From Klebsormidium nitens (Eukaryota > Plantae > Klebsormidiophyceae), in assembly GCA_000708835.1 (NCBI GenBank), contig DF236961.1:378332-442331 (forward strand): a DNA stretch of 64,000 bases, in the 5' to 3' direction. The position numbers and the translations under genes are program-made. The notes under the pieces were generated by a model, which ran no database searches, was not told the origin of the DNA, and was given only the letters and a program-made list of their open reading frames with translations. How positions within the stretch are numbered: the first letter of the stretch is position 1; every line of letters starts with the position of its first letter. Positions 3,709 through 64,000 of this stretch are shown piece by piece.

Positions 3709-6700
3709 ATGGCCCCCTCACGCCGAGTTCCGCAGTTGAACATCGCAGGCATTGGGTCGCCAAGAGAAGCACCCCTTGAGAAATCTGAGGAAACCCTAGT
3801 CCCAATCAGGAACCCTATTTCTGATGTGGTCTCTCCTCAGCCTGCCACAGGATCTCACAACGAAAGCCATGCATTCTCCTCTGAGCAGCCAGTTGGGGTT
3901 GCTGCACAGCATGCGGGCTCGGTTATACATAAGAGCTCGCACGAGTGGAAGCTCCTCTCGCCACGCAGCCTCGCAGCTCTCCAATTCACGAACGAGTTGG
4001 ACAACATCCTCTCCAAGACTAACCTCAAGTCGGCGCCAAATTCGCCCCGGCAGGGGGGTGCGAATGGACCCGTGGGGAGACCCCATCCGGGCACCATACT
4101 GCGCAGCAAGAGCCAAATCATGGGCACGAACGCAGGCAGCGTTCCAACCCTCCTGGTCAACCAAATGCTTGTTGGGGGTTCCAAAGATAAGGAGAGCCAG
4201 TCTGCTGCGCCGAGTCCCAGGTTATCCAAACCGAGTTTCGCGCAGACCCCTCCGCACTCTCCAGGGGGTTTGTTCATCGAGCAATTGGGAGGGAGTCAAT
4301 TCCAGCAAGCCAGGTTGGGGGCGCCAGAGATCAGCCGGTTTGGGGCCGAGAGGTGGTTAGGCACTAACCCTGGTACTGACCAGCCCACTCCAGTCCCGGG
4401 GGAGTCAGCCCAGGCGGAGCCGATTATGCGGAACAAGGACATGGTTAAGAGGCTGCAGCTGGAGAAAGGAAGCGGCGCGCCACGGAAGCGAAGCAGCAAC
4501 GAGGGGAAGCTGCAAAATAGGCCGCCCGACAGAGCGTCAGGGGTTTGGAGGCTTGAGGATGCTGCCCCTCAGGAAAGCGCCAGCTTAGACGGCCTGGTGT
4601 CAAACTCCCTAGAGCTCGTGAAGAAGGAGAATGGCTTGGGGGCTTTGACACCAGGGAACGGGGTTGCGGAGGAGAGGAAAGTCAAGCGGGGGCCAATTCG
4701 AATCAGGGCGGTTAAGCTGCCAGAACAGAGGATTGTTGAGCAGGCGTCGTTAGGAGAGAGGGGAAAGGGGAGCCCAAGGGGGGACAGTATTGGGGGGCAG
4801 CTCAAACTGGAAATTGCTCCGGTAGAGACCCCCATCGAAGGTGAGGCTCGCCGAGGTGAAGGATTTCGTACACAAGCGCGTTTTTTACAAACCCGTAATG
4901 TTGAGGTCCGAGGTCACCGCAAAGGTTCTTCCTGAGGCCGTTTCTTGCACGCCCGGGCTGGGATCCATGTCGGCAGATGCTTTTGAGCAAGAAGCTAGGC
5001 GTTTGTTGAGATGCATGCACTTCTGACATTGGCAACTTGACTTTCTGAGTTTGTTCCGCCCTCAAAAAACAGCTTCGAAGCTTTTCAGAATTCATCAGCT
5101 GAGACAGTCTTCACCCCGATTGAGAAACGATGTCAGGGCTGCGGCAAAATGTTGCATGCCAGTCATGGCAAAGGTGAAGCGAGCAGATACTGCCGGCATT
5201 TCCATCTCTATCCTCATTTATCCGCCTTGACAAACGAAAGGTTACGTTTGGACCTCAAAAATCTATTGTCGTCCCACCTCGTTCTAGCTTCCCTGGTAGT
5301 TTATGTTCGCTCTTACCTGACAGAGCATCACCAATTCATATCGACTTTCTCAACTAATCTTCTCAAGTCTATGCTCGACCCTTTGCCACACAGTCTAAGC
5401 ACGACCTTCCCCACTATACCATCTTCGAACAGATCTGCCGTATGTGCCCCTATCATCCTTGCTTCTCGTCTCACCTTTGCCGCCGTCGATCCCATTTTGC
5501 AGCGAAACCGGAGCCCGAGTTTGTGATAACCTGGACGGGGGATCCCCCTCTCTTTCCCCAACCAAACCACGGCCGCGCCGCCACTCACGTCCCCCAACCC
5601 CTCTCCCTCCTCACCGCTCGCCAAGTGTCCGTCCTCAACCTCCCCGCTGACATCAGCAAGATGTCACCCAAGCACTCCCCCGGGGGGGGCAGCCCGCGCA
5701 CGCCGCCAGTCTCCTCCGACCCCCCCCCCGTGCCTGAAAAGCACTTTCCGATGGCGCCCCCCCAGCTCGGATCGCTCACTCAGCGGCTGTATGAAAAAGA
5801 TGACGTGCGGTTACTCCCCGGGTTTGGCGCTAACCACTGGGTAGTTTACGACCGGGAAAACCAGGCGGACCTCACGCCGTTCCCCACGTGGAAACCCCCC
5901 CGGAACGAGCCCCCGAAAAACGCGGAGCGCTCGCCCCGTGGGCCCACCCCCGGGTTCGAAAACGCGGTTAGCCCCCTAACCGGGGGGAAAACTAAAAGCG
6001 CGCTGCAGGTCGGTTTCGAAAACCTGAAAATTGGGGCGGATCTGAAAGGGATCCTTGAGGGTCTCGCGAGCGACGTGGCGCCTCTTCAGCCCGCCAGCCA
6101 CAACGCGCTAATCCGCGTGGTTAAGGAGACGGATTCCAGCGCAACTAGCAGCGGGAGGAATACGCCCCGGGCGGCGGACGTGTTGAGCTTCGAGTCGCGG
6201 TTCGAGACTGGGAACTTGCGAAAGGCGACGCTGGTTGAAGATAACGAGTACGATTTGATGTTGCAAACGGACGTCGGGATGTCGGGTCACACGCAGTGGT
6301 TCTACTTCGGCGTGCGGAACATGCGGCCCAAGACGAGGTGAGATATGGATGCGAAATGGCCGTTTGTTTTGACTGCAGTTCTCTTCATGAGTCTTATGAT
6401 GCCTTGGGTCGGCGAACAAAAGCACGGAGAGGATTTTGCTTCTTTGTTTAGCCATATCAGCCGCAAAGTGATCGAGGCAACATCTGCTTTAGAGTCCGAG
6501 GATCATCATTGAAACTTCTGAAAAGAATGGTGCTTCCAGACGAGGATTTGAAAAGTGTCCAACGAAGAATTGAAGGCTTCTTGTCCGGATTACGGTAAAG
6601 ATACAATTAACCCGAACCGGCCGGAACATCAAATTGGTGTTGGAACAGCTTTGTAACGAAAGCTGTCTTATCTTACCAGGCTCTCAATATGCTCCTCTCA

Positions 6701-9700
6701 AGGCTCACAGACAAAGAAAATTAAGAGTCCCGATTAAAGGCAAACCCATTCCCTGCGCAGGTACAAGTTCAACGTCCTTAACCTGCTCAAACCGAAGAGC
6801 CTTTTCCAAGAGGGGATGCGCATTCTCGCATACTCAGAGCGTCTGGCATCGACGATTAAGCAGGGGTGGTTTCGTACCGGGGACGAGATTGCGTACTTTC
6901 CGAACAAGGTTAAGAAGAAAGGGACGGGTTACTACACGCTAACCTTCGTGCTGGACCCGCCGTTTGCGGACGACACGCTCTACCTGGCGTACTGCTACCC
7001 GTATACGTATACGGATCTGCAAGCGTATCTGAAGGTGAGGATTCGAGAGACTGGTTGATACCGTCTCCTCTTTGCTGACATGGGATCAGTGCCGGTTCTT
7101 GTCGTGATGTTGAAACGCCGTCTGTAAGAAGCATTGGGTCGAGGGAGGCCTCAGCTTTGCTCGCAATCTTTGACATTGGTACCCAATAGCGGTGCAAGGG
7201 CCGCCTGGTGCTTGGAAAATGATCATGTCCACGACGAACTAAAATGTGGAGCTGTTGAGGAATGCGTAGCTTAAAATCGTTCGTACTTCCCGAACCGGCG
7301 CTTCGAAACCATAGTAGCAAATTTATGCTAGTATTCTGAAGCAAGAGCAAAGGAACGGGCCGTCCATGCTTAACCCGCGATTTTCTGTTTGCGACCGGTC
7401 AGATGGGCCTGTTTACTTTTGTGAGCCAGACAAAGTCAGAAGAGAAGAGACCGATCTCGTTAACCTGGATCCCATAACTTAACAGTTCGCTTTCGTCAGG
7501 TCTTGTGTTCAGAACCCGTCCGGTAGCTTTTCGTCGATACATCAACAGACGTTATGCTACCTGTATTCAAACAAGAGCAGAGGGACAGGATCTATGGATC
7601 AGAAAGCAAATCTCTCGACTTAAATTCTGAGAGCCAAGCAACCCTCTCCCGGCAGGCTTTGTGTTCCGATCCTGTCCGGTCGCCCTTCGTCGAACGGGAG
7701 CTCCTCTGTCGGACGCTGTCCGGAAACCGGTGCGATCTGCTGACCATCACCTCGCGTGGCGGGCAGGAAAAGGTGAGCCAATAGGTAGCCCCGAAACAAA
7801 ATATAGATCGTCCGTTAAAATAGAGTCACCCACAAGCGGTGCCGAGAAGTATCACTGTGCTCCTGCATCTTGCCTGAGCTTGCTTTTATCGATTTCCAGA
7901 AACTGCCTTTGGCTTCTTCGGACATTGGCCACCAGTCTCAGTCTCAAACGATACCTCTTGGATTATCTGAGCGTCGATCGCGCGTTTGCGAATTCCCGTC
8001 GGGTCAGAATGCTCAAGCGAGCGAAATTCGTGAAGCCTGGAGGAGTCGGCATTGAAATCCTGTCATATTCGGACGGCAAAGTTGGCGTGCCGCTTTTGTC
8101 CGCACGAAAAACTGATTGCCCGTTGCGCGCAAGCAGAATGTTCGACTTTGGACCGTCGTGGCAGCTGCAGGAAAAAGAAGCGCGTATAAAGCAAACCCGG
8201 TGTCTCCGTCTAACAAGCCCAGTGTGCTCAGACGCTTCCCACTTTATGTACTGATATCGGGTACTTTATTCAGTCACTAGTTGTTAGCATAGTAGCCTAC
8301 TATGCTTTTGAATTGCAGGGCCAGCTCAAAAAGCGCGCTCACAGCACATCCGGTGTGTCCATGAGACCAAGCCCAGTGGGCTCAGACGGTTTCCAGTTCT
8401 GGTAATCACTGATTTAATCACTCATGTCTCCCTTGTCTCCTTTGTTTGACCGTCTACTTTGCACTTGTGGTTGCAGGGCAAGCCCAAGAAGCGCGCGGTG
8501 GTCCTGTCCGCGCGCGTGCACCCGGGGGAGAGCAACGCGAGCTGGATGATGAAGGGCGCGCTCGACTTTCTCACCAGTGCGCGGCCCGAGGCGGAGAAAC
8601 TGCGCGAGACCACGATATTCAAGGTGAGACGATCGTGACAATTCTAAGATAGCCTCAACAGTCTTGGTCTGCAAACTCGCTTTCGACCTTCTCCTTGGGT
8701 TAACTCCAGGCGCAGTCAGCCGAGCTGCAGCTTTTCCAGGGTTTGATCTGGTCTTCGGTCAGAAAGATTGTTCCTAGAAAAGTTTGAAGTGGATCACGTC
8801 AAAGCTGTATTCAGAAACATGCGTTCCGAGGTTGCACTCGACGGCGAGGTATCGGAAAAGTGCTGGTGGCTCTCCATTGAGTCCAGATGCTCGGATGCCA
8901 AACCCTGCAGGTGCAATCTTCGTTTTATCGCCGATTTGCGCAGGAGGTTTTTGGAACAATGACAAGCCGTAAGGCCCCATTCTGGTGCGGCTCTGATCAA
9001 CATTCCGCCTACTCCGTTCCGTTCCGCCCAGATCGTTCCAATGCTGAACCCCGACGGCGTGATCAACGGCAACCACCGGTGCTCGCTCAAGCCACTAGTC
9101 TTTTCGAATCGCGTGATGAATCGATGCGGCTTGCTTTCCGACATACTCAAAATTCCGCTCATGCGTTCCCGTTGCGTTCCGTTCAGATCATTCCGATGCT
9201 GAACCCCGACGGCGTGATCAACGGCAATCACCGGTGCTCGCTCGCGCAAGTGGACCTGAACCGTCTTTACACCAGCCCGCTCCAAGAGCGCCACCCCACG
9301 GTGTGGCACATCAAGGAGATGGTGAAAAGGCTCCAGCAGGAGAGGGAGGTCATAGCGTATGTGGACCTGCACGGGCACTCAGCCAAGAAGAACGTGAGCC
9401 ATCCGCTTATTGTCTTGTACCCTTTTGTTAACTTAGAAGCTAAGCCCTTCTGTTTTCTGTGCCACTACTTCAAGCCACATCGTTGGGCCGCTGCTTCTGG
9501 CACCTGATGCTGCTTCTGGCACCTGATGCTGCTTCTTCTTATCGATTTGCGCATTTTGTCTCCGTGTCTCCGCAAACCCAGCTCTTCTTCGATGCATGCC
9601 TTTTGGTAATTCTTGGGCCACCGTCTGCGCGGACACCTTTAGACCCTGTGGTTTTTTGATGTCAAAGGCCCTCGTGTGTAGATGCACTCTAACTGTGAAT

Positions 9701-11530
9701 ACCTAGACGAACGAGGTACTCTTCTCCTTCCCAAGATCGGCCCATCATTCCGTAAAAGCGCCTTTCAATCTAAGAAGCTCTATAACCCCATTAATCCTCT
9801 GTGTGTCGTTCAATTTGCTTAGAAGTGTTTCTTCACGTGGAATATTCCAAAATTGGATACCCTAAAACCCTCAGTGGTCACTCCCCGACGCCTCGTCACC
9901 TTACTCCAATCCCTTCTGCAGATCTTCATGTACGGCTGCGAGAACAAGCACGCCCCCGCGGCCGCACCCGACGCCACCCCCGCGCCGCCGAGCTACGCGG
10001 CCGCGGCCGCGACCCGCCTCGCGGAGCGCGTCTTCCCATACCTAGTTTCCAAGGCGGCTCCGGACGCGTTCTCGTTTCCGGACTGCAATTTCCGCGTCCA
10101 AAAGTCCAAAGAGTCGACGGCGCGCGTCGTGGGCTGGCGCGAGTTTGGGCTGCTCAACTGCCTGACGCTCGAGGCGTCGTTTGCGGGGCCGTCGATCGGG
10201 CGCGTAGCAAACCACGTGAGTGCGACGCTAGTAGATTCACCATTTCCTTTCTGTGTTCGTCTGTTTCCTTCTAGTTTCATAGTGTTTCATTTCGAGTGCC
10301 TCGTTACTACTTGGGCTGCTCAACTGTCTGACGCTCGAGGCGTCGTTTGCGGGGCCGTCGATCGGGCGCGAAGCGAATCACGTAAGTGCACCCTTTTTAA
10401 ACTTTGCTTCCGCTTTCTCTTGTTCTCATGACACCCTTTATCTTTTTCTATGGTGTATTGAGCCGCGCCTTCACCATTTTTGCGCTCACTCCTCTGGTGA
10501 CTAGAATCTCGCTTTCCTTCGGGGGCAGTCCATCCTATTGCAGTCATCGCAAAATACCGGATTGACAAGCATGTTCAACATCGCATGGTCGCCAGGGCAA
10601 CGACGTTCTCGCTGCGTCCGTGAAGCTGACACACAGTCCCTAAGAGAAAGTCGGAATCGGATCCATTAATTTGGTATAGGGATTCCGTCCTTCTTCCCAC
10701 TTAGAACCGCACACTTTCAGTCCCACTCACACAAGGTCGATACTTTCTCGCAGCACTTTACCATGGCCGATCTGATGGACATGGGCGCCTCGCTCTGCCG
10801 CGCGCTCCTCGAATACTGCACGGTCGCCGAAACGCCTTCCCCCGAGCGGTCTCTCCCAGACATCCTCAAAGAGGTGGAGGCCGCCCAACCGGGCACTTCT
10901 CAGGGCGACCCAAACGGCTCCGACGAAGACTCCGAAGCCGGGAGCAGCGCGAGCGACGACGTTCCGCACGATTTGCGTCAGGGAAAGGGCGGCCTCGCGT
11001 GGGCGCTCGGCGGCCGCAAGAGCGCCAAAACCCCGGGGGTTCCGGCGGGCGACGGTGCGGCCGCGGCTGCGGCCGCGCGCGCGCCCGCGAAGCGGAAGAA
11101 GCGGCGGAAGAAGGCGCGGAAGGTGGACCTCGAGGAGATGGCACGCAAGATGGGGACGGCGAAAGTGCACAGCGAGATGGCCGCGAGCGTGTCGGCGATG
11201 CTCCAGGCGAAGGGCGGCCGCGGGGTGGTTTGCGAAACCCCGCATAAACCCGGGCGCTCGTCGTGGGCGCGGCCGTGGCCCGACGTCGCGCGGTTGTTGG
11301 GCGGCGAGGGGTTTGGGGTTTTAGACAAAGGGGCGTCGTTCCGGCGGCTTCCGGTGGAAGCCCCGATTGTGGACCTAGGAGTTGAGGGGTCGGTGATCAA
11401 ACGGGCACCCCGGAGAACTAGCAAGGGCAACATCCCGTTGCCCCGGTTGGAAAAGGGGACGTCGTTTAAACTGGCCCCCATGCGGGAGCCCCCGCCCGAC
11501 CTAGACTTGTCGTGGCTGCCGCCGCTTTGA
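3709..11530 (+). CDS. Cytosolic carboxypeptidase (M14 zinc peptidase, CCP/Nna1/AGBL family; tubulin deglutamylase type), about 1260 aa
   Basis: Phase-compatible exons 3709-4840, 5503-6337, 6761-7034, 7656-7772, 8477-8623, 9187-9393, 9922-10215, 10754-11530 total 3783 nt. Family motifs: [10 protein letters not shown] and HTQWFYF (CCP N-domain), ARVHPGE (Zn ligands), [18 protein letters not shown] (third Zn ligand), TLEASF (catalytic Glu). The paralog subtype is not assigned. Confidence 0.92.
9491..9536. repeat. 19-bp tandem repeat (about 2.4 copies) in a CCP intron
   Basis: CTGCTTCTGGCACCTGATG x2 plus a partial copy. Confidence 0.8.
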
Positions 11531-14500
11531 GTTGGAAGAATCGCGTTTTACCTCGTAGGTGAAGGACGCTCGCATGCCATTTGTGTTGGTTCTTGGCTTG
11601 CCGGTCGTTTGTGATTCTTGGGCACTGCTTGGAGCAAGCAAAATAAGGACGTACGAGCAAGGACCAAGAAAGTGTCGCCTGCTTCCACTGTCCACTGACT
11701 GAGAGCTCGAGAATTCTTTACTAATCGTTGCGGTCATGGCAATTCTTTCGGCAACTATGACGACATTTTCAGTTCGTTGCAACAGACAAGGCTCAAGCAC
11801 AGATTTGCGCCTAATCTGGCTTTGGTGTCTCTAAGCAGGCTCGTGATTAAAAGGAGTTGACATCGTGGCCTAGTGGTTCGTCCGGCATACCTGAGTGATT
11901 CCCATGAAGGTGTATCGTCTACTTCGATTATGTTTGGAAAAATCTTCGATCAGAACATTGCATGCAGATCATTGGATCCTGCAGTACAAGAAAGGCGTTA
12001 CACAGCGATTGCCGCAAACGGAAGTGCTATTCAGCAATGTTAGTAATACAAGCGCGATAGTAACGAATTGCATCATTGATATCCGATTGATATCAATGAT
12101 GCAATTCTTATCATCGATGCAGCATCTCGAGCCGCTTATAAAGCATTCCTGGCCAGGTGGCAATTGCATGTACTGGCAGGCCCCGTGCCTGTCCACTTCG
12201 CGAATGTATGTGACGCCTCCGCATTTTTTGCTATTGGACTGGTCAGACTATTGTCACCAAGAATTCGCTATACACTGATTGGCGTACCGCTGTCTATACT
12301 GGCAACTCACTTGTTTCTTCAGGGGCTTGTCTTCTAAGATTCACAAGCCCTAGGCACCGCAACAAAAAACGTGACCCAAAAGCTCGTGCGCTTCGCAGCC
12401 TACTACCCATGCACCCTAACCACTAAACCAACCCTACCCGGCCCCCGGCCTGTAACCTAAGGAGACAAGCCCTTACCAGACAAAGAATTGTAGCCAAGTC
12501 CGCAGATTGAATATATAGCGGTTGGTGGACAAGGCTGCCTATCGGTGTCACCACGTGCACCGCCGATATTGGTAATTTTTACAGCTGGGACGGCAATAAT
12601 CGCTCCTTCTGAAGCTCATGGTACTACAAGAACAGTAAAATATGTGTCCGGTCAGTCTAAGCTGACTTCATCAGCTGAGAACGGACGGCTCTGACAGTAG
12701 GTCGCAATGAACAGTCTCATCCATCATCTGGCGACGAGCCTTTGGACGTTTTCAACAAAATTTTGTTCTTGGGTAACTTCAACGATACTTCTGATGGGGA
12801 CTCGCTCTTGTAGAACAAGTTTGAGAAGCCGCGACGCTTTAGATCTGAACCTCTCTCAGCCCCACTTGCAACAATTTTCTGTTCGGTGGCACCAGCGATG
12901 GTCCCAGGATTGCAACAATTCTTTTGTATCAATTTACGTGACTCCTCACCTCTAACCGACCTCCATATCTTTGCAGAATCGTTCAGAGGGCGTTCAAGGG
13001 CGCATCCGACCAGCCGACTCCTGCGGCTGCACTCCCCTCTGCACGGCGTCTATAGTCTTATCCTTTTCTATCCAAGTAAGTAATAGCAATCCCAGCTGAA
13101 CATGGACTGAGATCTGTTGTCGAGTCCTCCAAGCAATAATGCTAAGGTCATCGCGCTGCCAAGGCAGACTCAAAAACTTAAAGTGGACGGAGCTGTCTCC
13201 TACAACAACGCTCTGCACTAAAAGTACTGGTGGATAAGGTTTATAAACTCGAGTTCTCAGCTGGTTGTTAGACCACTCCTCGATCCGGGAGTTTGTCTCC
13301 CCGAGATCTGCTGCTAGCGCGTCGATCTTTGACTTATCCAATCTTTATACACGTCGTCTGAATTACTGTCCCGAAAAACTGCCTGAAAGAAATCTACTGT
13401 GTTTGGCTAAAATTGCTTCTGACTGCTATTGTGGCATATGGAAGTAGACTCTCGTTCACAACCTGCGGCATGATAGATATCTCGTAAGGGTGCCGATCAC
13501 AACTCAAATGCTCCGCTGTTGCTGCAGCCATGGCGATTGCAGTGATTGTACTGAATGAATCTTGTATGTGTACACATGATTGACGCAAACATGAACGCGC
13601 AGAAGATGATCGACCAGTCGCATCGATCCCCATCCAAGTTCAAGCTCGCATGGCAAATTGATGCGCATGCTTGGCTGACGTACTATGTCAAGCGGTAGAA
13701 CCAATGCTTCGAGGCGGCTCACCTTCAACTGGACTTATTGGAGCGATAACAGCCGCTGCAAGTTCATCTTGTCTTTGACGGTATTGCAATTGGACCGGCC
13801 ACCCCCCTCTCACTTCTGTGTCCTCGCGTTCTTTCGCGTCCTGTCTAACCGTTCCATCAGCTCTATCTGCGAGAAAGGTACGCCATGATGGGTATATTTG
13901 GACGGCTGTCTGCTTGCCGAGCGGAAGCGCTCATTTGATGGCGTCCAAAGCAGGAGTTAATATACAAACTTATTTCGACGAAGTTACTTCAACCCTCGGG
14001 AAAAAAACCGCTGCTCTTCAATTACCTCTTCCGTCGTATACCTTATTCATACAAAGCGCTGTCTTCGCGGGCGTCTTATTTGGACAGATATGCTTCTGTC
14101 TTGTACGACCTCTATTTGGCTGGACCAGTGTTTGTGTTCTTTCTGTCTGTTGGGCGTCGGAAATGTAATTACTGCCATGCTTTCCCCGAACGACGAACGT
14201 GAGGACTCTGCAAGACTGGTTGGAAACAAAAGCAGTAATCGAATTTATATTCCGCGTAGTCTCACTTCCTAAACCTCTTCCAAGAAGTCCCAAAGCGGAT
14301 GCGTACCCTTTTTCCAAGATGAAGCGCTGAAATTAGACAGAGTCCGATTCAGATCCCCCCATTCCAGGCCTTACCCTGCATATTTCCGGGCGTCCAAGTT
14401 GGAGGCTTACGAGTGCCTCGACGGCAACTACTAGGTAGCTCAAGGAGCCGGACCTCCCCGCTGCCACCGCCAAGGCAGCAATCAGGCGGCTCAACATTGC

Positions 14501-16482
14501 CCCAAGGACCGCGCTCTTCCAAGAGAAGCTGGCCGAGAACACGCAGCAAGTGCGGCGATGCGTGGACAGCTCAGGTAAGGGGTCCCTCACATGTGCGGTA
14601 CGAGATCGAAAAGGGTAACACGTTTACCTTCTAACGCACAGGAAGTGAAAGGGTGTGCTTCGGAGATCAACCAGCGGCCGGGGACCATGCTAGTTATACT
14701 TTGTACCTATACTAAGCCGCCCTCCAAGTGTTAGAAAGCAAGGGCTGAGCGAGGGTGAATGCCCATCTGCGGATCTGAATCCTTCATTTTGATCAAGACG
14801 TGAGGTGCTTACGTTGGTGTGGCTCTGCGTGATTACGCCATGTGGAATTCAGAGGGCGTTCTGTCCCGTAACAGCCTGGTAGAAAATGATGAAATCTTTT
14901 CTAGATACAGAAAGCTGGCTCGCTATGAGTGCACCAGTCTGTCATTTCGTTTCGTACACGAAAGTTTGTCACAGCCTGTCTGCCTTTGGCGGTGGAGTTA
15001 GTTAAGTTGTCGACTTTGATCATCCGGGATCTGCCTCAGCAGCTCTGCCTACTCAATCTGTTACTTCGATGCGGATAACCGATGGAACTCACGACAGTTG
15101 CTGATAAGTTGGCCCTTTTGGTGGAGCGGTCCTGCTCAAGGGAGAAGGCCTGGGTTGAGGCTGCTGTAAAGATGGCGACGAGAAACAGAACCCGATCAAC
15201 ATCGCATCCGCAAACAACTTTACGCATTTTTCTACAGGCTAAGTAGTGCGGGCGTATGAGGACCGTTGACCTAGGTTCCGTCCAGCATGTGTTGACAACT
15301 TTGTGTGGATCCAGCTGAGTCGAGTACAGTTGGAAATCGACTTACAAACAAGTTCCCGTATGGATGTGAGTGGCAAGCAACGAGCGGCAAGCAAGCAGCC
15401 CATCTCAAAAAAAATGAGCACCCGTATATATTCGAATATGCAGCCAGAAAGTCTCGGGGGACGCTTGTGCCCGTGACTCCTTGAATCTGTTTTATGTCCC
15501 TAGATTGGTTGCGTGCAATGACGCGATCTTATCCTTACCGGTTACTGGTTACCCAATGGCGCACACACCCGTGCGCAAGTATTCTGAGCGGTGTGACTGC
15601 GCAGTCGTGCCAAAGCTAGGTTTGTGTTCTTGGGTATAAGGCGTTCAAGGACGTGCACTGCAAGATCATATTGCATGGCCGTCATGCCCCATCGGACATC
15701 ATACCAGGATACGATCGGTGTCTAACCGTCCGACTAGACCGTCAGAAGGATTCGTACTGATCACGGTGCAGTGCACATGCCTGATTACCTTAGCCAGTTG
15801 ATTGGGTCAAACTTAAATTAGACTTGGGAAAAGGGCGGCTGCCGAGAGCAGCCTATCATTGCGGCCGGCCCGGGCCCCAGCCGCGCCACAGATGACGCGT
15901 ATCGATTGGCGGCTATAAGCCACTGAGGCATGGGCCGCGCCAACCAGCTGCATGCAACCATTTGGGGTGGCGGCAGAATCGGACATGTGCGTATGTTGAT
16001 TTCAACCGCTGTATGCACCGCACACACACATGTGTGTTAAGTTGCCCGATCTGACAGAACAGATTCCCTCGACCTACACCTGTAGATATTTACGCCTCAG
16101 TACAATCGCGGCTCAATCTGCTGAGTCACTCACTGCATGCAAGTCAAATCAACATTTCAACATCACATGAACTCAAAGATGCAATTTTATAGTCTGGCCA
16201 TATGCGGCGTAAGGTACCAACTGTTGAATGGCCATGCCGGCACCGTCGCTTTAAACATACCTTAGGTATGATCTAACACATGTGACATGAAGTGTTCACG
16301 TCTTCCAATCGCAATTAGAAGCAACTTTCGGACTCAGGTTGTGTCGGATGGGCATTAGTATATGCATGTCATTCGCCAGGTCACTTTGACACATGTCTGC
16401 AGCGTAAGCACGACTTTGTCGGTTGTGGCAATCCGATGCAGATTGGTACTTGGGGAACTCGTATCTCAGTAACAGTAAGATA

Positions 16483-19375
16483 TTAGGACTTTTTAAATAC
16501 CCCTAGCTGCTTGGCAATCATAGTACCAAGCCAAACAACGGCGGCCCCCTTCATCCAACTCATCAGAATCTGCACCTGCTTCTCCACTCTCTCACTAGCG
16601 TCTTTGCTCCGCTCGCTCGCAGCCGCGCTCCGCTCGCTTGCCGCCTCGCTGCGCGCGCTCGCCTGCTCACTCCGCTCGCTCGCCTCCGCGCTGCGCGCGC
16701 TCGCCTNNNNNNNNNNNNNNNNNNNNNNNNNNNNNNNNNNNNNNNNNNNNNNNNNNNNNNNNNNNNNNNNNNNNNNNNNNNNNNNNNNNNNNNNNNNNNN
16801 NNNNNNNNNNNNNNNNNNNNNNNNNNNNNNNNNNNNNNNNNNNNNNNNNNNNNNNNNNNNNNNNNNNNNNNNNNNNNNNNNNNNNNNNNNNNNNNNNNNN
16901 NNNNNNNNNNNNNNNNNNNNNNNNNNNNNNNNNNNNNNNNNNNNNNNNNNNNNNNNNNNNNNNNNNNNNNNNNNNNNNNNNNGCTCACTCCGCTCGCTCG
17001 CCTCCGCGCTGCGCGCGCTCGCCTCCGCGCTTTGTTTACTTGCCGTTGCGCTTTCTTCGGCCTTGTCTGCAGCGAGCTTCGACGATGAGGCTGCCTCGTT
17101 CGCAGTCCTCGCGCTCTCCGTTGTGATTGTAAGCAGACGACTAACGTCTTGTGCGAGTAGATCTGCAGAGGGGAAAATTCGCTCAACATATCGATTCCGC
17201 TTACACAGGAATCAAGGGCACTTGGCAGGCGGCATGTCCATAAACGCCATGCAGCCAACTTCAACGGACATGCCAGAAGAAGAATGCAATCAGATGATTT
17301 CTTGATAGCACGTCAACGCCGGGAGCTGCACACTTTCAGCTGATGAGCGGAAACACTTGGTCAGGTAAGGGACGTTTCTTACGTTCGCAAGATACATATA
17401 GGAGGGCCCCCACTTTGTGCAGCGCCGACAGGTTGGGGAATATGTCTGGATGAAGCTCCACCAGCCGACGTGCGACAGGCTGACTGTCCCGGTGGAGCGC
17501 TAGTGCCGCATATACGATCACCTAGCAATTCAGAACAGAGGCTGACTTAGTACTCAGGTGTGGCCAATTTGACTGGTTGCGAAATCCGTAACACTGGACC
17601 TGATGTGGCAATGAACAGATTCTGTACACTCCAGTTTCTTTCTAACATTGGAATCCATCCATAATCTCTTCCACTAGACGTCCACAACAATTGATGGGGA
17701 GGGCACGAGGCCAATTTGTCTCAATTTGTCACCCAGGATCGGCAGTTGGGATCGACCGATCAGGTCCGAAACATGTCGGATAGAGTCAGCCAATCCACCG
17801 TATCCAGTTCAGCGAACGCATTTTGCAGACTCTATGCATGATTCTGCTTACCTGGGGCGCTGAGAAGGAGCAGTCGGAAGTGCTCTGCAGGTCGGTCAGG
17901 GGCGTGCTGTCAGCTGGGGCGGTGCTCTGTGAACTGGTTGATCGTTGAAGCGCGTCAGGCGGGGGCACGTGCTGCACGTTGGTTGGCGGGTCAACCGAGG
18001 AAGGGTCGACTGGGGGCGCGCTTGGCTGGTCCACACCCATGGATGTTGGGGGGAGATGCTCCGGGCCGCTGGTTGAAGTGGTTTCCACGTTGGTGATGGA
18101 GCTGCTGTTGGGGGCAATTGCTAACCGCGCCCTTTGCAGGGCTACTTGCGCTGCCCGCTCCAACGATGCAACCTTCTTCGGGATGCCCGCTTCCTCGACG
18201 AGGGACGACTCCGCAACCACCAGGCTATTTGTGCCTGGCAGCGCCGAAGGGGTGATCTTGCTGTTTTCGGACGCTTCAATTGGGGAGTCTTTCGGGGTTT
18301 GTGGCTCTGGATTCAGTGGTTCCACAATGTTATCCAGGCCCTGCAAGTACCAGACGTTACACAGCTGTCAGACTAGAAGGGCATGAAAGCTCCGGAAATG
18401 CCAGTTCAGCAGTGAAACAAACTCTGCAGCAGCCACAGCCACCTGCCTGACAGTCATGGACCGTAGTGCTTTCTCTTGTCCAACGTGCTTCTCAAAGCAA
18501 ACGGTTTCTTGAAACCGTTTCTGCCACAATCAGCTCTTTACCAAGTGCCAAAAGTACTGCCTCGGCCATGCTCAGAAGGACTCAGAGTGAGGAAGACACT
18601 CCTATTTACCACCAGGCCTTGTTCCCAGGATCAGGGCAAGAAATACCCCAGACAATCAGGCCTAGTGGTGAGGAGCAATGTTAACCTTTTCTATCACCAT
18701 TAAGCCCTTGCTTGGAGCCCCAACAAGCAGAACAACCATGCATACGTGGCTCAGTACGAAGGGTGACAGCATGAGAAGCCTCCTCTGCGCTCGAAGACTG
18801 AAATCAGACACATACACTCGCGGCATTCCCAAAGTTGAGCTCCAGTGGTTGACTTACAACGCGCAATATGAGTCCCCTTCTAAAGTGGATACAAGTAGTA
18901 CTCCGCAGGCAGTTTGACTCACCACCAGCGTGATCGTCAACTTTCCGGGTGATGTTGTCTCTCTTGACCGTCGTGTGTGGATGTAGAGATCCACTTCCAG
19001 GCTTGCATCCACAGCTGGAGCGGCTGCCTTTCCGTCCCCCTTTTCTAAGATAGCTTTTGACAGACTCTGAAGCGTCATGATGGGGTCCGGCACATTTCCC
19101 CTGGCGTGCTCGACCAGGAGGGTCTGCAAGCTGAGCACATTATTCTTGATCTTCTTATCCCTCCCACTATGTAACAATGCCCTTGCAATGTCATGCATGT
19201 TGGCGAGTGCTGCCTGCGCATCCAACCCATTCACCTGTCGGGCAAAGGACTGTGATGTCACATCTCCTGCTTCACAAACCTTTACATTGGCCTTCTGTAA
19301 ATACTGGAGCAAAAGATTCTGTGCTATAAGCTCCTGATACACAGAAATCCCCTCCCGAACCATGACGGTGGTCAA
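16483..19375 (-). CDS. Unknown protein: Pro/Ser-rich middle, Ala/Ser/Glu/Arg heptad repeats, C-terminal hydrophobic segment (5' end uncertain)
   Basis: Phase-compatible exons 18340-17852, 17521-17383, 17162-16483 (TAA at 16485-16483), plus a probable upstream exon ending at 18923. The last exon reads ...SAEASARSAEASERSEQ[gap][59 protein letters not shown]. Confidence 0.55.
16600..17030 (-). repeat. Coding tandem repeat (21/42-bp units) collapsed around an assembly gap
   Basis: Units such as CGCTCGCTCGCCTCCGCGCTGCGCGCGCTCGCCTGCTCACTC flank 276 Ns (16707-16982). The reading frame is the same on both sides. Confidence 0.85.
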
Positions 19376-57779: not shown

Positions 57780-60404
57780 ATGTATCGAATTTGCCTTACG
57801 ATGCTCGACGCTGTTTTGTTTTCGACTGAAGAGTTTTTGAGCCGTATCGCTTATTTCATGAAGTCCCAAGAGCTGTGTGGGGATGTTTTCAGAATGTGAG
57901 GTGCACTGTGCTCTAACAAAACCCGGCCGTCTGCACCTCCCAGCCACTATCACATGCTTGAGTGACACCATCTTCGTATGCTCGGAGTTCTACTGAGCGC
58001 TAGCTTCTTACTGAGCGCTAGCTTGTTGGAAGGCGTTGAGCGCATTGAATGACCTTGTGCTGGCCATCGACAACCCTGAACTGTATTCGGCGGTTGGCCT
58101 GGAGGCACACGAACATAGTCAGGCTGTTTCGGCCGCTTAGGCCGGCCCGGCCATTCTGTCTGGTGATTTGGTGTTTAGTAGAGCTGTAGCTTAGTGCTTT
58201 AGACGAGGAATAACTCTGTCAATGAGGGTTTAAATATGTTCCTTATACTTCATTCACGCACTTGCATTTCCGAGGTTCAGATTTGGCCGCCGTACTATGA
58301 TAATATGATTATGTGAATACCAAAGAGGGCACCCCGCTCCTCCGAATGCATGTCAGTCAATTTGATTCCCCCCACGTGAACCATCTTAACACGGCAGCGG
58401 GATTCGACCTATAGAAGACAAAAGACAGGCAGAATGCAGATCAAACGTGGCGCGTCGATTTGATGCATGAGCAACGCAGTGCAACTCGACGATCTGCAAC
58501 TTCAAATGTGCAGTAATATTTGGTCGAATTTGCAGATGCAATCGTCAACTTTACTTGCACGGCCGCCGCATTGAGACGGTGACGGTGAATGTTTTCGATC
58601 GAAGATCGAACTAATCCGAGAACGACGTTTATCCCTAGCGTACCGAACTCAGTACGGTACCGTAGTGACTACTGATTATATAATAACAGAATCTCATACA
58701 GAGCCGGAAGAAAAAAATTTGCATGCCTATACATAATATACCATAAAAGGTCTATACATGTATATACACTTTGTATCGAAATATCGCGAGGCCGGACTCG
58801 TAGCATTCAGTGAATTGTACGTATGGTATGGCATGCATGTTACGTATGGTATGGGATGCACGAGTACTTACGGCCTGGCCCGGGAGTACACAACGCTGTA
58901 TGCATAATACTGTGAGTCAACCGTGCAACGTACTGCATGTCGAATGATCATTCAAGCATCTAGCACACTGCAGGCCGGTACAATACGTCATTGTATGACG
59001 TCTGACACTTGTCTTTGAGACAGGTCCATCTTGTCTTGATTGTCGAGCACGGTCCAATCCATCAAACAATCTGCTACTTTCTTTGAAGGTTGCTTTGGAT
59101 CACGAACACACGGGAAGGAACCAGTCCTTTTCTCGAGCAGATGTAGCCGGGGAACGGCTCGACGGGACCTGACGAAAAGTGGCCGTTCGCATCATGATGC
59201 ACTTTACCGCGGCTGCAATTTTTGCCGCCTGCAGTGCGGAGACTTGACGAAGTACGGCGATTGCTTAAACGGCTTTGACATTGAAGATCTATCGGTTTGC
59301 GAGCAACCAAGCCTGCGATTGGAAAGCTTGGCTTGTAACACACGGCAACAGATAGCTACGAGCTTGAGACTCTTTGAGTTGTGATACAGGTGTCCAGTAC
59401 GTTCAAGACCCTTTCGCGTGTCTCGAAACACTATAGATAGGACACAGACACTCTCAATGATCACTACAGGACCATTGCTCCGTCTTTGCCTGAAAAGCAA
59501 GATTTGAAAAGCAGCAGCACACACGATACAATCGCCCATGTGAAGTCATTATGGGACCGGATGATTATGCATGGATCGAATGTCGAGGACCGCCAAAGCT
59601 GCTGCAAAAGGCTGTGCACCGAGGTTGATAAAAGTAGCATACAAGCACTCTAGGTGAACTTTCCATGGACAGACGTACACGCCATATGATGCACAGATTA
59701 GATGATTGGAGCACTGTTCTAGCGTCCACTGTTGGATGACCGCAGATCAGCATGAAATTCCGTCCAAATCTTCGCTGAACTGAATGTGTTGGCGACCATC
59801 GATTAGAGCATGATGTTATCATGACCCAGGAATGTATTGTTTGTCGATCTATGTGACATAAAATAATCTGAGGGTTGGCCTATTACTGCACTTGCCTAAA
59901 CCAGTGCTGATTCTGCGGGGGCCTGCATCTCCACGCTACATACTTTAGGCCGTTGGTAGAGCTCCTTAATCCGCCTTGGACCCCAAAATGAGAGGCAATA
60001 GAGCACACCCCCCGCCAGAAATATCCACGTGGTTCCACGAAGGGGTCAACTGTCCGCAACTCAAGCCGAGTCAACAAATGACAAACGGTAACAACCGCAC
60101 CACGAAATTTTGACAACCTGGTGCACTGGTCCCTTCGAATTCAGCTGATCGAGCTAGCTCCGGGCTGCCATCTCACCATTAGTTGGGTTACTGCCTGCTG
60201 CGCCGCTTTTACCACAATCCAACACCTCCTCCGCTAATAGCTGTGCTATATAGCTTATATGCATCTCATTTGCAGGAATCTTATTCCAAAGAATGGCCTC
60301 TATAGGTATCACCGTCAGATTCACTAATGCTAAGCAAGGCTCGACCGATGAGCGCACCCCAGCACCACAAGCTTTAGAACTACAATCTAAAAGCACCTCG
60401 CACT

Positions 60405-60899
60405 TTAACCAAAGAAACCGGGGGTGTCTTCCCAGGAACGGCTGGAGAAGTCGGCAGGAGCCTGAGGAGTTGGGGCTGGAGCCTCAGGGGTTGCTTCCCC
60501 CCAGAAACTGGGGATGTCTTCGAAGGAACGGAAGTCGGCAGGAGCCTGAGGGGTTGGGGCTGGAGCCTCAGGGGTTGCTTCCCCCCAGAAACTGGGGGTG
60601 TCTTCAAAGGAACGGCTGGAGAAGTCGGCAGGAGCCCGAGGGGTTGGGGCTGGAGCCCGAGGGGTTGGGGTTGGAGCCCGAGCCCGAGGGGTTGGGGTTG
60701 GGGCTGGAGCCTGAGGGGTTGGAGCTGGAGCCTCAGGGGTTGCTCCCCCGAAGAAACTGGGGATGTCTTCCCAAGACGCGAAAGAGCTTTGGGCTGGAGC
60801 CTTAGGGGTTGCTTCCCAAGACCCATTGGAGCTTTGGGCTGGAGACCGAGGGGTTGCTTGCCAGAAACCGCTGGAGCTTTGGGCTGAAGAGTTTGCGCT
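60405..60899 (-). repeat. Coding repeat array in the RbcS tail (84-90-bp units plus 18-bp APTP sub-repeats)
   Basis: Four S[WF]ED[IT]P[SG]F[FW]G motifs separated by 45, 18 and 20 aa of [17 protein letters not shown]-type spacer, preceded by two W[QE]ATP..PAQSS units. All length differences between units preserve frame. Confidence 0.95.
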
Positions 60900-62420
60900 G
60901 GGCTTGTACACGATGAAGCCAGCAGCCTGGACCTGCCTCCTCCTGTTGAAGCCGAGGACGCGGACGTAGGTTCCAGGGAAGGTCCTCTTGCACTCCTCAA
61001 CCTCGCTCAGCACCTCGTTGGCGTTTTGGCAGCCGAACAGAGGCAGCTTCCACATGGTCCAGTAGCGGCCGTCATAGTATCCAGGGCTGGTGTGGTGCTC
61101 CCTGTGGATGAAACCGTTCTGCAACAGAAAAGTCAAAATGAGTGCACCAAATGAGGATGGACAATGAAGGGCATTTGAAGAGGCTGGGGTCTCCTATTTC
61201 TCCAAATGGAGGATTAGTCTCAAACCAATGTGATGACTTTCTAGGAATCAAAAGCATTGATGGCTGACAGGTTCTCTTGCCCTCTTGTGACATTTGCATC
61301 TTCTCTACATCACAATCGATCACTTGCGAAATCGTCTTAAGGCTTTCGCTTTTACCAACAAATCTGTCAAGGCACTGCAGAGCTACCAAGCCGAGTCAGC
61401 AGATCGACGTTGACGTGTTCAAAATGAGACTAGATCTACAAGACAGACAGACTGGAGACAGAAGAGGGCTGTAGTACTTACATTGTCGAACTCAATACAG
61501 GGGCTCCAGCCCTGTGCCAGGAGGTAGTCCACCTGCTTCAGGATCTGTTGAGCGGAGAGGGGGGGGAGGTAGGAGAGGGTCTCGAACTTCTTGTTGTTGA
61601 TGGGGGTCCACACCTGGAAGGCAGAAAGGAAACAGAATGTTAACAACTTTCCCAATGCCGAATGCAGCTCTCTGTCTTGGAGCTATCCCGTAGCTATACT
61701 CAAAGCAGAAATGAAAAGAGATGTTGAATGCAGCTATGTGTCTCGTAGCTATACTCAAGGAGGTAATGCCGCTAGTGGGATAAAGTGGATCTGCGCAAGC
61801 ACTCTTTGCCTCCCTTATTGACATGACATGTTCCTACAACGGTAAGGCATTTTTATTCATGATCCTATTGGCCGAACCCTTACCGGATTGACCGCGTTGA
61901 CCAAAATCGAAACTCGAGCGAGTAACCTCTTAACCGTCCTCTACTAACCCCACCAGACTCCCTGCTTCGAAAACGAGACATCCTTAACCCCAAAAGAAAG
62001 CCTTCATCGCAAAACTTTCAAAGGGGAGGTCATTCTAGTTTCAACTTCAAGTCCAGCCTGTATTGTAACCTTCAGTGGACCTTGAGTGACTCAGTTGCAC
62101 ATACTTTCCTTCTTAAAAACCAGTCTCTGACTAGATCTGATCTACAGTCCCTCACTACAATCTCCTCTCAGTTTGTCGAAACCATCAAGAAAAGGATGAA
62201 TCACCTGCATGTCCTGCATGGCCTGAACGCGAGATCCATTTGACACAGTCTGAGAAGCGAAGCCTTTGGAAGGAGTGCACAGAGCGTTCTTCTGCTTGAG
62301 GCCGGAGAAAGCTCTGAGAGGGGTGGCTGTCGAAGCCTTGCCGGCGACGCTAGCCTTGGCGGAGGCAGCTGCGAAGGAAGCAGCACAGCCGACGGACTGG
62401 ACAGCCAGGGAGGACGCCAT
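60405..62420 (-). CDS. rbcS: Rubisco small subunit precursor with a 164-aa repetitive C-terminal extension (353 aa)
   Basis: Exons 62420-62205, 61613-61482, 61118-60405. Transit peptide with AFSGLK and VSNGSRVQ motifs. Mature domain [19 protein letters not shown]...EFDN|[30 protein letters not shown]...[13 protein letters not shown]. Both introns are at the positions conserved in land-plant rbcS (MQ|VW and in the betaA-betaB loop). Confidence 0.97.
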
Positions 62421-64000
62421 TTTGGTGCGAGAGCTAAAAGATGCGCCTTGAAAAGTTGATGAACTGGAGGGAGAAAGGAATGCTGCGTGCTGCACTGTGT
62501 GATATGTATGATCCCTGCCCTCACAGCTGATCAGATGGAGAATGTGGAGCCTTCCAGCTTGAGCGGGAATGGTGGTTTAAAATTAACTATTAAGTAGGTT
62601 AGTGCGCGACGAAATCTGATAGGCCAGTGTTTAGGCCTGGATCAGTCCGTTTGCGAGGCCGGTGGCCGTGTGCATGCTGCAGGAGCCGGCCGGTTAACGA
62701 GCTTCTTGTGTGGGCCAGTGTGGGGTGAGCAAAGAAACCTGCACACATTTCAACATTTGTGGCCTGCGTTTTGCCTTCACAAGTACCGAATCTGCTCGAG
62801 GGGTTTTGGTGGCCGGTGGATAAGATTCGCACTTGACACCGCACAAAAAGGTAAAGGGCGACAACTGCATGGCACTTTTGGCGGTTCATCATGACGCTGG
62901 CATAGCCTGCGATCGAGTGCTGGGTCGCCTAGGACCCTATTGGCTGGCCGTCGAGTCCGAACACCAAGTGTGACATCATACATGAATGGCACAGGCGGAT
63001 TGAAATTGGACACCTGTCCCAGGGCCAAAGCGAATCGACGGCATCCTGAATTCCGCGGCAGCCTCCTGTGTCACCGTCGACCCCGACTCCCGCGCGGGCC
63101 TGGTGCGGCCGCCGGCCGGCGCGTCGGCCGGCCAGCGGTTTCATTGAATCCGACTGGACCGATCCAATCGCCACGCGGCCGGCCGGGCAGAGCCCGGGCA
63201 GAGTGGCCGACGACGCGGTGCAGCCTGCATGGCACACCGTACGGTACCACAACCGTTCGATAGACTTTTCCGTCATCGTGCGCCGTCAAATCGTTCATCG
63301 CACGGCCGGAGTTCAGTTTGAACCATTACATCGCAAAATTGGACCCGTCGAACGAAACTCATTAAGCTTTGCCTTAGGACTCAGGTGCAAAAAGTGCGCG
63401 GCACTGACTCGGGTATTGTCGTACTGCCCGGCTGAAATGTGAAAGTGGTCGGAAATACCACATTTCAGTCCGGCCGAGTGACCGCGGGACTGCATCCGGT
63501 AGGTACTTATCGAAATTTAAAATTCTTCACGGAACTCGGTGATTTCCGACTCGCCGAAACGCCTTGTTTCCAGTGAACACTGAGTTAAACTCACTGAACT
63601 CCGAGGCTACAAGCAGCGCACGAGGCCCGTAGCCCCAAATTCGCCGGCGACTCCGACTCAAATCGACCGGGCCTCGCGTGAGAGGCTGTACCACTGTTCT
63701 ACTAGCAAAATAGGCTGCGCCGAGGCTGCAGTGGCCAATATCCGGGCCTCCGAAGCGTTACATAGGTAGCTGAGACTTCAGACTTGCTGTTCGATCGCCT
63801 CTCGTGAGTTGGATTTCCTAGGGTCCAGACCGGTTGTGACGTCACGGAAATTTGCAAAACCTCCGAACCTTCACTTTCATGAACGGACGTGCGCGGCGGC
63901 CGGGCTTCAGCGGCCGCCGCCATTGAAGCCGCGGTCAAGATTGTTGCTTTCCAGTGACCTTATTCCCACGGGGTGGCAACTCCAGTTTTAAAATAGAGGG

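Follow-up and report, generated by a model that had tools for sequence, protein, structure and literature searches.

Background

Pyrenoid matrices form through multivalent stickers carried on disordered proteins. EPYC1, CsLinker and SUPA1 are free, abundant and basic, and their stickers, which are helical or fold on binding, are regularly spaced at ~60 aa. The PYCO1 protein of Phaeodactylum tricornutum uses short non-helical Trp stickers (KWSP) that bind the Rubisco small subunit, RbcS, and the aromatic residues of these stickers are essential (PMC10288592). In the hornwort Anthoceros agrestis an extended small subunit, RbcS-STAR, assembles and condenses Rubisco (Robison et al. 2026, reviewed in PMC13655443). 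As summarised in that review, the extension has two domains, predicted to be alpha-helical, which assemble homotypically into tetrameric coiled coils, and RbcS-STAR ranks second in abundance among the RbcS isoforms of the hornwort (PMC13655443). A disordered extension is also present in the gene model of Ulva RbcS2. It was dismissed as a linker on account of low abundance and poor RNA-seq support for the extension exons, and the extended gene model itself was doubted by the authors (bioRxiv 10.64898/2026.07.16.738900).

Klebsormidium has prominent pyrenoids that are crossed by thylakoids (PMC5633629). A literature search returned no paper that ties Klebsormidium or streptophyte algae to an RbcS-borne linker. 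To our knowledge no pyrenoid matrix linker is known in streptophyte algae, and the sole streptophyte case is that of hornwort RbcS-STAR, from 2026. The locus described here lies in a 64-kb stretch of DNA from Klebsormidium nitens (the window). It encodes an RbcS with a long C-terminal tail in which short aromatic and acidic motifs alternate with low-complexity spacers.

Gene structure and RbcS core

The gene consists of three exons on the minus strand (62420-60405) and encodes a protein of 353 aa (Table 1). The last exon (61118-60405) passes through the canonical end of RbcS (GFIVYKP) and continues for 164 codons in frame without a stop, to TAA. The sequence thus bears out the first-pass annotation, which had reported the missing stop after YKP and a 164-aa tail in the same exon. 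The exon 1/exon 2 joint is seen in RNA at 61610>62202 (cut +3), with GT..AG on the minus strand. The 5'UTR is 77% identical to that of the orthologue described below (contig L001). At the other end of the gene X9 record 22 and X1 record 1, two contigs with the depth of the gene, extend from the tail to ~200 nt past position 60000. No further copy of RbcS or of the tail motif was found within the 64-kb window.

Table 1. Features of the tailed RbcS gene, with positions in the window
Feature	Position	Strand	Evidence
5'UTR	62421..62558, upstream limit approximate	-	RNA contig X9 record 28 spans 62202-62558
Exon 1: ATG and 72-aa chloroplast transit peptide, ending ...VQAMQDMQ	62205..62420	-	Sequence; RNA joint
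Exon 2: first 44 aa (N-terminal) of mature RbcS	61482..61613	-	tblastn; RNA joints on both sides
Exon 3, RbcS core part, to canonical ...FIVYKP	60900..61118	-	Pfam PF00101; RNA joint 61118|61482
Exon 3 continued, 164-aa C-terminal tail	60408..60899	-	Sequence; RNA contigs
Half motif 1, WQATP	60849..60863	-	Orthologue has WQAT
Half motif 2, WEATP	60804..60818	-	Orthologue has WDQAP at the equivalent place
Full motif 1	60747..60776	-	Orthologue has SWEDAPSFFG, 87% nt identity
Full motif 2, inside recently duplicated 84-nt unit	60582..60611	-	Sequence; repeat analysis
Full motif 3, inside recently duplicated 84-nt unit	60498..60527	-	Sequence; repeat analysis
Full motif 4, the protein C-terminus	60408..60437	-	Orthologue has SWEDTPSFFG, 29/30 nt identical
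Stop codon TAA	60405..60407	-	Same stop after same terminal motif in orthologue
3'UTR	59800..60404, downstream limit approximate	-	X9 record 22, X1 record 1

The core is that of an ordinary small subunit. Its exon 3 part alone matches the Pfam family PF00101 (RuBisCO_small) with 79 bits and an E value of 2e-22, and the full orthologue matches it with 128 bits, both against a cut-off of 27 bits. All invariant RbcS columns are retained in the alignments. The closest named RbcS is the canonical K. nitens protein P0004, which is 75% identical across exon 3, ends in YKPGQY and has a near-identical transit peptide. Calculated from sequence, the mature tailed form would have a mass of ~31 kDa, as against ~14 kDa for the core alone.

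A small tandem duplication (62205-62222, minus strand) is found at the end of exon 1, in the cleavage region of the transit peptide. This region reads ...VQAMQDMQ|VWTP here, ...VQAMKSWNP in the orthologue and ...QAMKVWTP in the canonical K. nitens RbcS, and the duplication could shift the mature N-terminus.

Short extensions occur at the C-terminus of other small subunits. A Klebsormidium-like RbcS (P0005, L023:272-694) from JGI metatranscriptome 3300038448, which also contains the tailed orthologue, carries a 21-aa extension that is rich in Ser, Asp and Arg and ends in ...YSQSAW followed by a stop. In the RbcS of Chlorokybus (P0087) an Asn/Gln-rich extension of ~19 aa is found at the same end. 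Short C-terminal extensions thus seem to be common among the RbcS of early-diverging streptophyte algae. The top-scoring database match (P0001, metaclust, 288 aa) is an RbcS whose core segments are internally repeated, most likely a chimera of assembly rather than a genuine tailed RbcS.

Transcripts and their abundance

Contigs from four public runs (X1, X9, X15 and X17) were aligned to positions 60000-62600. Depth in these runs is 0-15 in the introns and hundreds to thousands in the exons, and both GT..AG joints are present, which indicates that the runs are RNA. The joint 61118|61482 was found in contigs of all four. Transcripts that splice or end before the tail had been named beforehand as an outcome that would count against the fusion. 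Three contigs (X9 record 24, X17 record 17 and X15 record 12) span the exon 2/3 joint and continue through 60900 into the tail with 0 mismatches, so that the YKP-tail junction is crossed without splicing or termination. Other contigs cover the remaining tail and ~600 nt of 3'UTR, with contig breaks confined to the repeat. Among the contigs of the four runs there is no splice joint within the tail.

The depth profile is consistent with a single mature transcript. In X9 the depth is 155.7 over exon 1, 166.5 over exons 2 and 3 with the proximal tail, and 157 over the distal tail and 3'UTR; the corresponding values in X1 are 478, 627 and 549. This equal depth, together with the absence of a joint inside the tail, indicates that most of the mature mRNA includes the tail, and since no stop precedes the tail, translation of RbcS must enter it. 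An assembly artefact and an origin of the tail from an intron or untranslated region are both ruled out by the RNA contigs.

Expression of the transcript is steady across the four runs, at a low share of total RbcS. Depth summed over conserved RbcS stretches comes to 6200-6660 in X9, 9200-17300 in X1, 280-740 in X17 and 32-39 in X15, and most of this is contributed by other paralogues. The tailed isoform accounts for ~3-13% of RbcS contig word depth, a value that is an upper bound and that comes from contig depth, a poor measure of expression. The ends of the paralogue contigs in X1, X9 and X17 match exact 30-mers at four places, one of them intronic, in contig DF237042.1 of the K. nitens assembly GCA_000708835.1, and these places lie in the canonical K. 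nitens RbcS locus. Since contigs of these runs also match the window without mismatch, the window is assigned to K. nitens or a near-identical strain.

One contig departs from the depth profile of the gene. It is 83 nt long, matches 60485-60567 exactly and reaches a depth of 5741 in X1, ~9x the value for the rest of the gene (~550-630); the ratio in X9 is 1.8x. Three copies of the repeat within the gene cannot yield a ninefold excess, so that another transcript sharing the repeat, or a library artefact, is possible.

Composition of the tail

The tail consists of 20% Pro, 18% Ala and 14% Ser, with a pI of 4.35 and a net charge of -8. It carries six motifs, two of them half motifs (W-Q/E-A-T-P) and four of them full (S-[WF]-E-D-x-P-[SG]-F-[FW]-G), separated by spacers rich in Pro, Ala, Ser and Thr. 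Every full motif contains E-D and has F-F-G or F-W-G as its last three residues. The tail has 19 aromatic residues, and each of them is part of a motif or adjoins one. Successive full motifs are separated by 45, 18 and 20 aa; these spacings and the motif positions had been given exactly in the first-pass annotation.

Tandem Repeats Finder detects an 84-nt unit (28 codons) in 2.9 copies with 87% match, and a 45-nt unit in 2.4 copies that covers the half motifs. Indels between units that are multiples of 3 had earlier been taken as a sign of selection on the protein. The repeat periods are indeed all multiples of 3. However, the three C-terminal units are recent in-frame tandem duplicates and are not independent evidence of selection. 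GC3 is 0.52 in the tail and 0.86 in the RbcS core, which indicates that the tail is without codon adaptation. In both species the tail has a second open frame on the same strand, +1, and in a G+C-rich repeat this makes an open frame alone weak evidence; nothing points to use of the +1 frame.

Conservation in a sister species

A tailed orthologue (cluster P0002) is represented by three spliced mRNA contigs, of which L001 and L025 come from two JGI metatranscriptomes and L024 from one SRA run. The full open reading frame (P0127) has 273 aa. Relative to the K. nitens gene, core dS is ~0.17 and dN/dS is 0.39. Judging from these sequences, the source is a sister, Klebsormidium-like species. Its tail is 87 aa long. 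The motifs in it are WQAT, WDQAP, SWEDAPSFFG and, at the C-terminus, SWEDTPSFFG, after which come the same TAA stop and a homologous 3'UTR. The reading frame, the terminal motif and the stop are therefore kept despite a difference of 77 codons in tail length.

Nucleotide identity between the two species is unevenly distributed. The core shows 90% identity and the two shared full motifs 87% and 97%, as against 54-62% for the spacers and 68% for the 3'UTR. The motifs are thus conserved like the enzyme core, whereas the rest of the tail turns over faster than untranslated sequence. The spacers also differ in composition, being rich in Ser, Arg and Glu in the orthologue and in Pro, Ala and Thr in K. 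nitens. This contrast between motif and spacer is the signature expected of stickers and spacers, as seen in one close species pair.

Retention of the motifs in orthologues had been proposed as a check on the sticker-and-spacer layout, and the sister species provides it, in that its tail has retained the motifs, with the terminal one followed by the stop, on a background of unconserved spacers. The suggestion that the many Thr-Pro sites of the tail act as phospho-switches fares less well. There are 15 such sites in the K. nitens tail and 1 in that of the orthologue, a disparity that makes Thr-Pro a matter of spacer composition and not a conserved feature.

Predicted structure and distribution

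The tail is predicted to be intrinsically disordered, again in keeping with a sticker-and-spacer layout. In an AlphaFold2 model of the orthologue, made with a small alignment, pLDDT is 80-90 in the core and 41-55 in the tail, which contains no helix or strand. In the model of the K. nitens exon 3 product the 164-aa tail has a pLDDT of 45-72 and no secondary structure by DSSP. No Pfam family matches the tail. Against PDB sequences the sole matches are faint ones to the flexible Ala/Pro linkers of pyruvate dehydrogenase E2, and against the ESM Atlas nothing is matched but low-scoring disordered repeat proteins.

Wider searches found a related tail only in the cluster of the orthologue. The K. 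nitens tail itself is absent from proteins of 130-415 aa in a collection of 5.8 billion proteins. A word search of this collection with the K. nitens tail alone was swamped by Pro/Ala-rich candidates and gave one spurious match, and a word search with the orthologue tail returned its own cluster only. The tailed gene model seems to be publicly unannotated. An exhaustive search of 1.84 billion representatives with a profile of the motif unit (30 positions) produced three unrelated matches, of which two are translated satellite-like repeats and one is a bacterial repeat domain. Proteins with a single motif fall below the detection limit of this search, which found no stand-alone protein with at least two motifs among the 1.84 billion representatives.

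Protein patterns and degenerate DNA patterns were also run against metagenome contigs, in a collection without the short metatranscriptome contigs that carry the orthologue. They matched 21 loci, all of them chance or unrelated, such as a bacterial family with SWEDPPWFFG and the N-terminus of a cytochrome oxidase. On present data the tail family appears limited to two Klebsormidium-like species.

Possible functions of the tail

The RbcS C-terminus is exposed on L8S8, and C-terminally extended or tagged RbcS can assemble. Tentatively, but in preference to the alternatives considered below, the tailed RbcS is interpreted as a covalently attached multivalent linker or tether of Rubisco in the pyrenoid matrix. 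Its core would enter L8S8 with the C-terminus facing outward, giving the holoenzyme a flexible arm with 4-6 stickers, which may bind a surface on a neighbouring Rubisco and so cross-link the enzyme or hold it in the pyrenoid matrix. The share of the isoform (3-13%) implies about one tail or fewer per holoenzyme. The tailed enzyme could accordingly be pictured, among untailed Rubisco, as a multivalent node in a role similar to that of a free-standing linker protein.

Several features weigh against this interpretation. The tail might be removed once the protein has been imported, and the tailed isoform contributes little to RbcS transcripts (~3-13%). The candidate sticker is acidic, whereas EPYC1 and SUPA1 have basic ones, and no second protein with the motif was found in the profile and word searches. 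GC3 of the tail is low, and conservation is seen in a single close species pair (core dS ~0.17). A more specific version, which we regard as somewhat unlikely, is that Klebsormidium has a self-linking Rubisco that arose independently of hornworts, in which a disordered sticker arm on a minor RbcS binds neighbouring Rubisco and nucleates or holds the matrix, without a free linker or alongside one. Such a built-in linker had been put forward from the sequence as a distinct route to a pyrenoid matrix. The fusion on which this proposal depends is real and transcribed, but the isoform is a minor one, and an RbcS-borne linker already has a precedent in hornwort STAR (2026).

An alternative that seems unlikely is that the motifs dock some other protein of the plastid, for example Rubisco activase, an assembly chaperone, or a protein of the starch sheath or pyrenoid membrane, and thereby anchor Rubisco or recruit that factor. 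Conservation of a short linear motif at the very C-terminus is a common trait of docking peptides, and low abundance would be more fitting for a tether or recruiter than for a linker that makes up the matrix in bulk. Short Rubisco-related motifs also organise tethers and chaperones in Chlamydomonas and Ulva. However, such an adaptor has no known partner, and the presence of 4-6 motif copies per arm suggests multivalent networking over single docking.

The tail may also have no dedicated function. It would in that case be a read-through extension, young and quickly evolving, that a minor RbcS paralogue tolerates at its exposed C-terminus or loses after import. The motifs shared by the two species would then reflect recent common ancestry and repeat duplication. 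This is consistent with the occurrence of the tail in two close species only (core dS ~0.17), with the low GC3 of the tail and the instability of spacers and repeat number, and with the short unrelated extensions on other streptophyte algal RbcS (P0005 and P0087). Low abundance, poor codon adaptation and narrow phylogenetic range together keep this explanation alive. We nevertheless judge it improbable, since the motifs are as conserved as the core (87-97% at the nucleotide level) while the spacers, at 54-62%, fall below the 3'UTR at 68%, and since frame, terminal motif and stop have outlasted a 77-codon change in length in a gene that is steadily expressed in 4/4 runs.

The least probable explanation is a homotypic linker, in which tails would stick to each other and bridge Rubisco through PSF[FW]G motifs resembling cohesive FG-type aromatic repeats. 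It is in line with the placement of 19/19 tail aromatics in or beside motifs and the F-F-G or F-W-G ends of the full motifs, with the lack of a predicted Rubisco-binding helix in the tail, with the condensation of Rubisco through homotypic contacts that the review of RbcS-STAR describes, and with the homotypic phase separation driven by the Trp and Tyr stickers of PYCO1 (PMC10288592), but a net charge of -8 and an E-D in every full motif would oppose self-association, the orthologue has only two full motifs, and at most about one tail per holoenzyme leaves a low valency for a pure tail-tail network.

If the preferred interpretation, a covalently attached linker or tether, is true, this gene would be a second, unrelated RbcS with a built-in arm, and would suggest that fusion of the linker to Rubisco is a recurrent evolutionary solution. 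Under the more specific version above, the motif would be a new Rubisco-binding peptide that acts on a land-plant-like (streptophyte) Rubisco. As a short sticker for crop-like Rubisco it would be of direct interest for building pyrenoids in C3 plants.

Comparison with known systems

Like Ulva RbcS2, the tailed RbcS of Klebsormidium is a minor paralogue that belongs to a green alga with pyrenoids and has a C-terminal extension predicted to be disordered, and the abundance caveat raised for the Ulva protein applies to it as well. Unlike in Ulva, the tail is encoded in the core's own exon, RNA contigs span its whole length, and it has been conserved in the sister species.

EPYC1 of Chlamydomonas, CsLinker of Chlorella and SUPA1 of Ulva share with the tail a layout of repeated short motifs and disordered spacers of tens of residues, in the same green-lineage pyrenoid setting. 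None of them has sequence similarity to the tail. In contrast to these proteins, the tail is an acidic part of RbcS, its motifs are unevenly spaced at 15-55 aa, and its transcript share is low. PYCO1 likewise has no sequence homology to the tail, and its likeness lies in disordered repeats with short non-helical motifs of Trp and Pro (KWSP there, [WF]EDxP here). PYCO1 is, however, a separate protein whose basic stickers have proven binding to a red-type Rubisco, whereas here an acidic candidate sticker is fused to RbcS.

The closest parallel is RbcS-STAR, as far as it is described in the review. Each is a nuclear-encoded isoform of RbcS in which a normal core is followed by a C-terminal extension, both occur beside canonical RbcS in a pyrenoid-bearing streptophyte, and the logic proposed for both is that of a linker that is covalently part of Rubisco. 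The extensions themselves differ. The first-pass annotation had described that of STAR as structured, and this is correct according to the review, in which two predicted alpha-helices form coiled coils (PMC13655443). The models of the Klebsormidium tail contain no helix (pLDDT 41-72), and the tail has 20% Pro. Its short aromatic-acidic motifs in Pro/Ala (or Ser/Arg) spacers further set it apart from STAR as described there. In the ranking of the 5.8-billion-protein search no tailed hornwort RbcS stands above the canonical RbcS. The hornwort and Klebsormidium lineages are far apart, with canonical RbcS between them, which makes it likely that the two extended small subunits originated independently.
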